From contig OZ251234.1 of the NCBI GenBank assembly GCA_965240325.2, positions 2,170,001-2,234,000 on the forward strand: DNA of 64,000 nucleotides, given 5' to 3'. The stretch comes from Rebecca billardiae RCC1528 (Eukaryota; Protista; Haptophyta). Position 1 is the first letter of the stretch. The number at the start of each line of letters is the position of its first letter. Both the position numbers and the translations under genes were made by a program. Under the pieces are notes generated by a model, which was given only the letters and a program-made list of their open reading frames with translations, had not been told where the DNA came from and made no database searches. This document shows positions 43,596 to 49,820 of the stretch, one piece after another.

Positions 43596-44488
43596 GTGGC
43601 GTTATAACGGAGTTATAACCGAGTGTGTCGGGAGGCTGGAAAGGCGACGCGCAGCTGGTGGACAAGGGCCGCCATCGTCTTCTAGGTCCTGCAGGTAGTT
43701 GTAGCCGATTTCCGGAGCTCATCGGCCACGGAGCTATCCTTTATCATCATCATGGCGGCCGCTGGTCCTTTCATATCGGCCAACCACACTGGCTCCTCTA
43801 TAAGTACCCGCTCCGCTCCACTATCCGGCGCTCGAGATCATATCCAAGATCATCTTAAGTCGGCATGGCAACGTATTACCAAAGTTCATCAAGCAGCCCA
43901 CCTATCAGAGCTCGCTCGATCATCGGTTACACGACCTTTCCGCTTTCGGGCCAAGCTGCTCATCTCTAGGCCACCCCTGCTTGCCTGCGCATCGCCATCA
44001 GCAAAGCCCGAGGTCTCATCTCCTCTGCGTTCCTTGCTTGTGCTCGTTGCGAAACCCGCCATCCGCCCCTGCAGCCTCCGTTGTGGTTGACGACCTTGTC
44101 GTCAGGCCTGTGAGTGCTGAGCTTGCCTGAGCCAGGGACCTTGCTGCCACGCTGGCGCAGTCTGCGCGCAGCTTTGGCACCGTCGGCTCAGTCGCTCTTC
44201 CCGTTCAGCCAGGGACAAATCTCCACCATGCGCAAGTATATATATACATCACCATTTCTGCATGGCGTGTATCATCGGCATTTGCTGCATGCTCACTCAC
44301 ATGTGCTGCAATACCTGCCCTCGCATGCACATCACGCAGATTGTGGGTAGGTGATGTTCGTCCATACTCAATGGCGTCGCGTCGCTTTCTATGCAGGAGG
44401 ACACACACACACACACACACACACACACACACACACACACACACACACACACACACACACACACACACACACACACACACACACACAC
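43596..44488. mobile_element. Putative element starting with the hairpin terminus shared with the 48262-49820 family; right end uncertain (possibly the (AC)44 tract)
   Basis: (TA)n|GTGGCGTTATAACGGAGTTATAACCGAGTGT versus the reverse complement of the 49820 end, AT|GTGGCGTTATAGGGAACCTATAACTGAGTGT. Confidence 0.55.
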
Positions 44489-44598
44489 ATATATATATAT
44501 ATATATATATATATATATATATATATATATATATATATATATATATATATATATATATATATATATATATATATATATATATATATATATATATATAT
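44401..44598. repeat. Compound microsatellite (AC)44(AT)55
   Basis: AC run 44401-44488 directly followed by AT run 44489-44598. Confidence 0.97.
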
Positions 44599-46575
44599 GA
44601 TTAAACTTTCTTCAGGAATGCGCACCAGAAAAAGCCTTAACAACCCGCGCGGCCCAAGATGGGGTCGGCGGCCACGACGGCGGTTATGCGCCCTTGCGCG
44701 CCTTGGAGCGGCTCGTGCGCGCCAGGAAGTGGGCCAAACCATGCTCGCGACATGCTCGTTCGTCGACGCTGATTGTTGGCCGATTGCATGCCAGCCCACG
44801 CCGACGTCTGAATGCGCCTCGCCGCGCACGGTACAGCTTGACGGTACACGGCACGATTCGGCCGCGAGCAGCCTCGTGCGCGCGACCGAGCCAGAGGTGG
44901 TCGTCGAGAGTAGCACGAGCGGCGGCACACAAGCGGGCCTGGTCGTTGCCGAATATCTGACGCACCAATCGACCTCGCCCAGCGCCATCTGCTCGTTTGT
45001 GCACGTGTTGGAAAGGATGAGCAGCTGCGTGCAAACGCCAAGCGCGCAGATGAGGCGTGGGCGAGCGAAGGGGCGGCGAGGGCCGGCGCGTGCGCGCGCG
45101 TAAATTCGAGCCTCCCCATACGCATCGAAACACACCGCGCTCGCTCGTCGAGCTGCGCACGGGTATCGGTGCGCGCGCTCCAACGCGGCGCGCCGTGAAC
45201 GCGCCCGGCGAATGCACACCTGCTCGCGCGCGCACGCGCACGTGATGGACCGAGGAGGCCGCGCGAGCATGCGCGATGTGTCTGGATGGAGCGTGTAGGA
45301 GGTGTAGGCTGCGCTCCGCACGCGCTCCGCCACCGTGCACCGCGCTGCCCCTCGTCCACGCGATCGCCGCCGAGCCCAGATTCAAACGCGCGCGAGCGCT
45401 CGAGCGCACCTCCGAGCAGCAGTCGCAGCTATCGTGACGAAGGCGTGGCGAGAGGCAGATGTGCATGGCAAGTATCGTCATGGTGGTGCCCATCACGCGC
45501 ACACTCTCGCGCATGCTCGCTGCACCACCTCGTCGCGCCCACGTGCAGCGCGCGGGGCGCGCTTCGTGCCCGGAGCAGCTGCGGAGCGGCTGCCGCGCGC
45601 AGTGCGCGCGGCGAGTAGGGCTCAGCCAATGGTCCGAGGGCGAGCCGGCCGAGCGTCGTGCGTGACGCACACGGACCTGGCGCAACGCCGCGTACCACTC
45701 GCAGCCACCATCGCGCCCGTACCAGCGAGCTGTGGCCGCCGCCGACACCCCAAAGCAGCCCAGCCGTCAGCGCGCGACAGCCGACGAGCGCGCGACGCGC
45801 GCGTGCACCACCGTGATGAGCACGGATGAGCGCGCGCGCCCGTGTCGTAGCTCAGGTGGGGTCCCCCGATCGCACGCACCACCGCGCTGCCACGCCTTCG
45901 ACCATCTTGTGTCACCACGCGGGCACACGTCGGGCAGGCGGCGGGGCAGCCCGCTCGGCAAACGGTCAGCGCGCAGCGAGGATGGAGTCCGGCGAGGGGC
46001 GACCGGAGTGTCCGGTGCGACGGAGGTGGTCCACGCCGTGGTCGCCGACGCGTTCCTCACCACCTCCGAGGCCGTGGTGGCCGCCCGGGAGAAGGAATGC
46101 TCCCAGTCGCACCCTTTGCAGTGCTCCTTTGCGCGTGCACGCAACGGCGAGGAGCGGAAGCGTTAGAGGGCACTTTTTGTGCAGTTCAGGCGTTCTTTCC
46201 CCAAAATGTAGAATGCGCGGAGAAGTGCCCTCTAACGATTTTTGTGTGCAGCCGTGCCGCGCGCGCGAGGAAGGCCACATGCGGCTCCTTGCACATCTGC
46301 TGCAGATCGGCTCGTGCTCGGCGAGCGCGGCGAGGAGGAAGGTGCGCGCTCGCGAGCTGGCGCACCTGAGAGTGATATCGGCATCCGATCAGGAAGAGCG
46401 GGTCGATCTGCCCGCAGCTCGTCGCACGATCGCGAGAGCGCACGTGCGGTCGACGAGGAAGAAGGCCCGCATCGTGGCGTTTCCGCCAGTGGCGGGCCGG
46501 CCCGAGATTTTACGGCGAAACTCCAGCGGGTTGTTAAGGCTTTTTCTGGTGCGCATTCCTGAAGAAAGTTTAATC
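44599..46575. mobile_element. ~2-kb non-autonomous DNA transposon with perfect 50-bp TIRs, inserted in (TA)n
   Basis: GATTAAACTTTCTTCAGGAATGCGCACCAGAAAAAGCCTTAACAACCCGC (44599-44648) and its exact reverse complement (46526-46575); AT repeats on both sides; no recognisable transposase. Confidence 0.92.
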
Positions 46576-46582
46576 ATATATA

Positions 46583-47579: not shown

Positions 47580-47581
47580 TA

Positions 47582-48243
47582 GCTACAGGGTGAGCGACGG
47601 CCGCAACGGTGCGGTGCGCCACCGCGCGGAACTCGTCCCGCGCGAGCGGCGCAAGCAGCTGCAGCTCCTCGACCGCGAGGTCTATGGCACGCTTGAGGGC
47701 CAGGTGGGCCCATACGAGGCGCGGCTCGACACCTTCCCCGCGATCGTCCCGATTGTCGTGGGGGCGTTCGGCGAGTGGAGCGCGGAGGTGGACCTCACCC
47801 TCAAGAAGATCGCCAAGATGGGGCGGGACACGTGGCGCGCGCGCCTCAGCGCGCCCTCGCGCCCCGCCGCCGAGCGCGCGCTGCTCGGCACCATGCGGCG
47901 CGAGCTGGGCATGCGCTGCCTGCGTGGCCAGGCCAAGATGCTCATCGCCCGCGCGCGCATGGCGCACGTGCGCCCGGGGGCACGCGCCCGCGGGGGCACT
48001 GCGTACGACGACTGCTTCGAGACGACGGCTGACGACGCGTGGCACCGCGACCACCGCGGTGGCGCGCGCGCGTCGACGCCAGACGGTGCGTCGAGCTTCC
48101 GCTCGGCGATGGAGTGATGGGCGACTACGAGGGGGGGGGACGACGGCGAGGAGCGCTGATCCTGGTGTTTGTCTCTGCTGCTCGATCTGCCGCTACAGCT
48201 TGCTGACTCTTCGGACGCCTGCCCGTTGCATACCACGTCGTTA
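47582..48243 (+). mobile_element. 5'-truncated non-LTR retrotransposon fragment (C-terminus of an RLE/CRE-like endonuclease plus 3' UTR), ending at (AT)n
   Basis: ORF 47590..48117 reads IVPIVVGAFGEWS..LKKIA...RRELGMRCLRGQAKML, resembling the 'F.P...E..G.W....L..LA...S..LQRGNA' tail of RLE-type elements. No RT domain remains. Confidence 0.55.
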
Positions 48244-48261
48244 ATATATATATATATATAT

Positions 48262-49820
48262 GTCTAGCCACTCCGCCATGCCCGGCTCGTACAAGGCGTC
48301 GGGTACGAATGGACTCTGGAGCTGGATGGTCGCGGCGCGCGGCGTCGTGGAGTAGACAGACCACAATGATCAATCATGGAACGATCAGGTTAGCTATGTT
48401 GGGATTTGAGCAACGAACGACAGCGGGCGCTGGCAGCGGCGTGGCGGTTGAGCTGCTGCCCGAGGTCGAGAGGGCGCCCGCGAGAACGATGAAGCGTGCG
48501 GGTTGACGCGACAGCGGCGAGAGCAAGAGACCATTGCATGAGGGGCGACGCGGCGAAGACAGATGATGACGTCGCGCCGCCGAACGATCAGGCGGGGAGC
48601 CGGGCCACACAGACAGCCAGCGACCTTACCGAGCAGAGGGGCTGCGGCGACTGCGGTGCACCTCCTGCAGCGGAGCGTGCACCCGGCAGTGCCCGATGCA
48701 GGCGATTCCCTTGCCCAGCTCGGCGCCTTCGTCGTGAGCAGCCCCATGGCGCCCCCGAGAGCGAAGCCTGATCGATCCGATGTGAGCGGTAACCAACCGA
48801 GTCCTGCAGGTGCGCCGCTGTGGGCCAGATTGGCAGCGCACCAGGACTCCTGCGCGCGGCGGTGCGCACAGGACAACGCAGGAATGCCGTGCGAGCCGGA
48901 TTCTTGGCGTCGCTCATAGACACTCAGTTATAGGTTCCCTATAACGCCACGTCTAGCCACTCCGCCATGCCCGGCTCGTACAAGGCGTCGGGTACGAATG
49001 GACTCTGGAGCTGGATGGTCGCGGCGCGCGGCGTCGTGGAGTAGACAGACCACAATGATCAATCATGGAACGATCAGGTTAGCTATGTTGGGATTTGAGC
49101 AACGAACGACAGCGGGCGCTGGCAGCGGCGTGGCGGTTGAGCTGCTGCCCGAGGTCGAGAGGGCGCCCGCGAGTCCCGTTTATAAGTTGGAGCGGGCGTC
49201 CAAGTAGTCGTTGATGAATCCCGTTTAGAAATAGAAGAGACGAGGACTGCGCGGCCGCGCGCGCACGATCGATCGCGACGCGCGGCGAGCAGACACGCGT
49301 CAGAGTGCGCCGCACCCGCGCGACGCACGGGCGCGAGGCGAGCGCGTATCTCAAACGATGAAGCGTGCGGGTTGACGCGACAGCGGCGAGAGCAAGAGAC
49401 CATTGCATGAGGGGCGACGCGGCGAAGACAGATGATGACGTCGCGCCGCCGAACGATCAGGCGGGGAGCCGGGCCACACAGACAGCCAGCGACCTTACCG
49501 AGCAGAGGGGCTGCGGCGACTGCGGTGCACCTCCTGCAGCGGAGCGTGCACCCGGCAGTGCCCGATGCAGGCGATTCCCTTGCCCAGCTCGGCGCCTTCG
49601 TCGTGAGCAGCCCCATGGCGCCCCCGAGAGCGAAGCCTGATCGATCCGATGTGAGCGGTCAACCAACCGAGTCCTGCAGGTGCGCCGCTGTGGGCCAGAT
49701 TGGCAGCGCACCAGGACTCCTGCGCGCGGCGGTGCGCACAGGACAACGCAGGAATGCCGTGCGAGCCGGATTCTTGGCGTCGCTCATAGACACTCAGTTA
49801 TAGGTTCCCTATAACGCCAC
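48262..49820. mobile_element. Head-to-tail dimer of a GT...AC-ended hairpin element inserted at T^A in (AT)n; units 48262-48950 and 48951-49820
   Basis: TAT|GTCTAGCCAC...GTTATAGG-TTC-CCTATAAC-GCCAC|GTCTAGCCAC...GCCAC|ATAT. The units are nearly identical except for an extra 180 bp (49174-49353) in unit 2. Confidence 0.85.

Follow-up and report, generated by a model that had tools for sequence, protein, structure and literature searches.

A hairpin-ended element in (AT)n of the haptophyte Rebecca billardiae has the layout of split-direct-repeat retroelements

The locus at positions 48262-49820 of a 64,000-nt window from Rebecca billardiae RCC1528 (GCA_965240325.2, contig OZ251234.1, positions 2,170,001 to 2,234,000) raises the question of what kind of mobile element lies there and how it entered its (AT)n target. 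The initial annotation described it as a dimer and as a member of a possibly undescribed rolling-circle-type family. The second claim is not supported, as the layout matches that of the split-direct-repeat tyrosine-recombinase retrotransposons, and the first does not agree with the two units, which are unequal. On balance the element is likely a miniature, non-autonomous split-direct-repeat retroelement of the order DIRS with a layout of the PAT/Ngaro/TOC/VIPER type that recombined into (AT)n at an AY^RT core, and 43596-44404 would be a solo unit from a sister family.

On the minus strand, the element reads A1-internal-B1-A2-B2 (Table 1). The first of its two units spans 48262-48950 and the second 48951-49820; each ends in GCCAC, and they differ in length by the 180 bp between 49174 and 49353, where the break shows no microhomology. 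A1 and A2 differ by a 1-base insertion at 49660, a base absent from sequencing run X1 (see below). It is this order, together with the identity of the repeats, that favours the split-repeat reading. The internal border B1|A2 matches the joined termini of the element. As this joint, GCCAC|GTCTAG, carries no target base, the first base of the element is fixed as G and the terminal T and A were assigned to the flank. The insertion borders are T^A, and no target duplication is apparent from the flanks and the joint. The initial annotation had also reported the bounds of the element and its seamless joint in (AT)n, and had considered the elements non-autonomous; all of this holds, the flanks being (AT)9 and (AT)3. 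As it also stated, no mobilising enzyme is encoded in the 64-kb window; neither 48262-49820 nor 43596-44404 has a Pfam or Rfam match. A long terminal repeat (LTR) element or solo LTR was rejected, as both the TG...CA ends and a duplication of 4-6 bp are lacking.

The joint was checked in Logan contigs of two runs, X1 and X2, which derive from two different sequencing studies. It is spanned by one contig of X1 (48921-48980) and one of X2 (48849-48995, 0 mismatches), which rules out an assembly artefact as its source. The positions 48950 and 48951 are also exact break points of X1 contigs, one of which runs on into a different, AT-led right flank. The spanning contigs, the exact breaks and the second flank indicate that the ends and the joint are real and that the family is multi-copy. 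The family is real, recently mobile and structurally conserved at its joint, and it prefers (AT)n. In one X1 copy the hairpin is left at its TA, 48942 (equivalent to 49812), and 231 bases of unrelated sequence follow, which are probably a nested insertion.

Table 1 Features of the two families and of the second split-repeat element (positions in the window)
Feature	Position	Strand	Remarks
Whole element, non-coding, 1,559 bp	48262..49820	-	minus-strand order A1-internal-B1-A2-B2
Repeat A1, 467 bp, begins with GTGGC and the hairpin	49354..49820	-	
Unique internal segment, 180 bp, TATA-like box near the B1 side	49174..49353	-	within X1 contig 48951-49812
Repeat B1, 223 bp, terminates in TAGAC	48951..49173	-	
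Repeat A2, 466 bp	48485..48950	-	
Repeat B2, 223 bp, same sequence as B1	48262..48484	-	
Hairpin in A2, 8-bp stem, GAA loop	48927..48945	-	
Hairpin in A1, separated from the terminus by 5 nt	49797..49815	-	
B1|A2 joint (between 48951 and 48950) as rod	48889..48981	-	fold z -3.2 to -4.3; joint in X1 and X2
Target flank (AT)9, doubling as tail region of the non-LTR element upstream	48244..48261	.	
Target flank (AT)3	49821..49826	.	
Sister family, single unit without internal repeat, 809 bp, with its own matched end GACAC on the far side	43596..44404	+	25 of the first 31 nt common with the end of the 48-kb element
Hairpin of the sister unit, 8-bp stem, GGA loop	43601..43619	+	2 compensatory pairs relative to the 48-kb element
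Subterminal arm, complement of 44378-44404 at the far end	43625..43651	+	
Left flank (AT)n of the 809-bp unit	43581..43595	.	
Right flank (AC)n, then (AT)55	44405..44598	.	AC run prolongs the element's own last bases
Unrelated split-repeat element, A1(285)-internal(818)-B1(300)-A2(279)-unique spacer(61)-B2(306)	26573..28621	+	

The hairpin near the end of the element, already recognized with its GAA loop in the initial annotation, has an 8-bp stem and recurs in other DNA. The terminus of the sister unit shares 25 of 31 nt with it, including the GNA loop, the two inner stem pairs being swapped compensatorily and the interiors unrelated, again as first described. A third version of the 29-nt end, with a GCA loop and altered inner pairs, was found in Pavlovales sp. 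CCMP2436 (L025:9803-9831) and keeps the first four bases and the outer stem of the 48-kb end; about 1e-9 such matches would be expected by chance in the DNA searched, for a pattern that was partly defined after the fact. Across the three versions all 24 stem cells are paired and three of the eight pairs covary. Selection thus maintains pairing in the terminal hairpin, as the initial annotation had proposed, and probably acts in single-stranded nucleic acid. The extra stability of GNA loops requires a C-G closing pair, and such a pair is present in two of the three stems. The CCMP2436 copy is broken by a small TA-inserting element and has a left flank that is AT-rich, not (AT)n; its far end was looked for and not found. 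The interrupting element belongs to a 167-bp miniature inverted-repeat family that inserts at TA (L025:9833-9999, 682-858, 10607-10764 and 12524-12893). Scans with the terminus pattern gave no strict match in metagenomes and 21 relaxed ones, none with a complete stem and hence taken as chance matches; viral contigs gave none, and prokaryote genomes a single match that lacks the stem.

Contrary to the initial statement that no terminal inverted repeat is present, both the 48-kb element and the sister unit carry an imperfect, asymmetric inverted repeat of ~30 nt, in which the far end pairs with an arm 29 nt inward from the hairpin end. The two repeats score 31 and 29 where the background is 10+-5 and 9+-5, in each case highest at offset 29; an end of one element paired with that of the other reaches 13 and 14. 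Only 5 bp of the repeat are perfect before it is interrupted. At the joint, the ends fold into a rod composed of an inner arm, a bulge, a 5-bp arm, a symmetric 5x5 internal loop, the 8-bp stem and the GNA cap; the joint itself sits at the foot of the 5x5 loop. The opposite ends, which bear no hairpin, fold at background level (z 0.6 and -0.25).

The inverted-repeat match served to set 44404 as the far end of the sister element. A 10-mer likeness between this end and that of the neighbouring element is non-significant (27 of 3860 controls). The (AC)n that follows from 44405 is the sole long AC run in the window and would have arisen by slippage. We infer that 43596-44404 is a solo A-B unit. Such units are known from Cafeteria Ngaro and from SIRE of Trypanosoma cruzi, the latter with a short unique middle; both share with the R. 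billardiae unit the single A-(short middle)-B form without coding capacity. For the R. billardiae unit, a full-length parent that would set its A/B border was not seen.

A second split-repeat element, unrelated in sequence, lies at 26573-28621. AT is found at its two termini and at its joint, which likewise folds as a rod with a hairpin opening A. In this element and the 48-kb one, the long unit leads when the strand is read from the hairpin end. Its 61-bp spacer between A2 and B2 occurs once in the window and is not producible by deletion from a dimer. TOC1 also has a unique spacer at this place. The body of the 26.5-kb element holds a 64-bp tandem array, and the element is inserted at AT in a diverged relative of the A repeat of the 48-kb element. 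This relative (26254-26572) matches the inner 300 bp of A at 87% identity; its surroundings are unrelated, with (AT)n tracts at 25811-25830 and 28723-28734, and a search for its continuation matched both B and the internal segment only at background level.

The order A1-body-B1-A2-B2, with B1|A2 as an internal copy of the joined ends, is established for Ngaro, PAT-like (TOC, kangaroo) and VIPER elements (PMC8547959, PMC6681497, PMC9210276, PMC4157794). In common with these, the 48-kb element has the order itself, identical repeats in the range of 150-470 bp, the internal joined-end copy, the absence of a target duplication and the occurrence of solos. It differs in its lack of open reading frames, its body of 180 bp, the covarying GNA-capped rod at the joint and an (AT)n target with a degenerate AYRT core. 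Target duplications are absent in DIRS elements, and one-base mismatches between their ends and joint are on record. Layout, ends, joint and covarying rod are direct observations; the group placement is to be understood as "works like", membership and superfamily being a matter of the autonomous partner and its reverse transcriptase (RT).

DIRS-order elements rebuild their ends on the internal copy and recombine the short joint with a similar target. By analogy, a transcript running from inside A1 to inside B2 would be reverse transcribed in trans, and the internal B1|A2 copy would template the missing ends, yielding complementary DNA (cDNA) with its ends joined as AC|GT. The tyrosine recombinase of an autonomous partner would then cross this joint with AT|AT in (AT)n, the shared core being AY^RT; a crossover in the middle of this core would leave the borders AT|GT and AC|AT and no duplication, and recombination between the repeats would give rise to solo units. 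The least certain step concerns the rod, which on single-stranded cDNA may be a recognition site or a signal for end joining or priming. In integron attC and CTX phage attP sites, two paired boxes, an unpaired spacer of ~5 nt and a loop cap go together with a crossover at the spacer edge and little homology to the target. Integration through a single-stranded cDNA joint with a similar fold (an arm, the 5x5 spacer, a second arm and the GNA cap), with one strand exchanged into (AT)n in an attC-like manner and not through a double-stranded circle, is a tentative proposal that we consider possible if somewhat doubtful. The likeness of the rod to these bacterial sites is one of shape alone, and its sequence does not match the attC core. 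For DIRS-1, the cDNA is single-stranded and its conversion to a double-stranded circle is unproven; end joining and integration in the DIRS order are still mostly a model, with single-stranded cDNA as the sole intermediate shown (PMC7192593). A joint with conserved pairing in three families and two species could offer a defined substrate for the question of a recombinase acting on folded single-stranded DNA.

Several observations weigh against a split-repeat retroelement. The joint and the target share no identical core, only AYRT. No RT or recombinase linked to these ends was found in the elements (Pfam), and the two CCMP2436 loci contain no recombinase, RT or Rep. In the literature, no terminal hairpin rod published for split-repeat elements was found. 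In X1, A-internal-B is present in one unbroken contig (48951-49812), as a plain dimer would yield, and the A2|B2 joint (48484/48485) was not found in the contigs of X1 and X2, which cannot prove its absence; a short A2|B2 link of low depth may have been lost during contig assembly. Lastly, the geometry of the ends is compatible with Helitron2 as well.

A non-autonomous Helitron2/Helentron-like element is therefore the main rival. Here an 870-bp monomer would be nicked at its end by RepHel, a dimer formed by way of a circle or by run-through would be inserted at T^A, and one unit would later have lost 180 bp. The unbroken 870-bp form and the joint in X1 agree with this, as does the asymmetric repeat, which in Helitron2 has its first arm at one terminus and its second before the hairpin of the opposite end (PMC3627910): arms are expected 0-2 nt from the 5' end and 20-30 nt from the 3' end, and both R. 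billardiae elements have the offset 29. The non-autonomous relatives FoHeli1/2, HINE and DINE-1 resemble the 48-kb element in this 0/29-nt repeat, the end hairpin, the GAA loop and the formation of tandems, known for Helitrons; FoHeli1/2 combine GAA-loop hairpins with insertion at TNAT^A (PMC5148889) and so form a published exception to the TT target of the group. A typical Helitron2-like element is also a close neighbour (42288-43578). However, the 48-kb element starts with G and not T, has a single hairpin and none at the 5' end, and shows 5 perfect bp in place of a matched inverted repeat of 8-15 bp; its target is T^A and not TT. Its unequal units would require an unexplained clean deletion in an otherwise identical young dimer, and the spacer of the 26.5-kb element would need a second, independent insertion exactly at the border. 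We consider this explanation unlikely; if it were true, the locus would hold another family of a known kind. Helitron1 was rejected, the TC start, CTRR end and A^T target all being absent. The initial annotation had likewise noted the misfit to canonical Helitrons; the two features by which it set these elements apart from Helitron-like ones, GAA loops and T^A insertion, are published for Helitron2, which removes its grounds for novelty. Hairpin-ended "tandem dimers" of algal genomes risk being misfiled as Helitrons.

The single-stranded DNA transposon first proposed, whether undescribed or of the Replitron/CRESS-Rep type, would nick AY^RT and target (AT)n. The seamless joint, the strand-specific GNA loops and the covarying stem speak for it. 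Replitrons, reported in haptophytes, are likewise without duplication and have a subterminal hairpin and a short direct repeat; in the 48-kb element, GTGGC recurs as a direct repeat 5 nt from the other terminus as in Replitron-1_mVir, with a chance of ~0.02. The direct repeat is missing from the sister element, no Rep partner is linked to the ends, and the split-repeat layout is not predicted, so that we regard this origin as improbable. Still more remote is a DNA-only recombinase or DDE element (a CryptonV- or Dada-like microsatellite targeter) or tandem repeats of the Penelope or retrozyme kind. Some CryptonV families do target microsatellites and Cryptons insert without duplication, but Cryptons need an end-target match of 4-6 bp and Dada a duplication of 6-7 bp, neither of which is found at the joint; as to Penelope or retrozymes, an Rfam scan with E up to 5 found neither a hammerhead nor any other RNA family in the repeat.

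The window is GC-rich with long single-exon genes, and mobile elements cluster at (AT)n tracts at ~37-50 kb. The Helitron2-like element at 42288-43578 has a perfect 11-bp asymmetric repeat (42288-42298 and 43519-43529) and a terminal 10-bp hairpin with a GAA loop abutting an AT tract. At 44599-46575, a 1.98-kb element with terminal inverted repeats of ~50 perfect bp lies between (AT)n tracts and is non-coding by Pfam; it is followed by a 1-kb element (46584-47578), whose terminal inverted repeats are 13 bp long and whose two ends have similar subterminal hairpins. Contigs of X1 diverge at 47582, the first position of a 3' fragment of a non-LTR retrotransposon (47582-48243) with ~5x single-copy depth in X1. 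Its longer relatives have an RT domain, and its closest named relatives are in Pavlovales sp. CCMP2436, which by itself would make the host probably a haptophyte of the Pavlovales. At 37925-39782, a foldback element with inverted arms of 750 bp is nested in an element with ends at ~36939 and 37925. Among the genes, 12497-25801 encodes a leucine-rich-repeat, proline-rich surface protein of 4,400 amino acids, 31122-36596 a SUN-domain protein, 40133-41482 an ankyrin protein and 202-1136 what we take to be a meckelin-like C-terminus.

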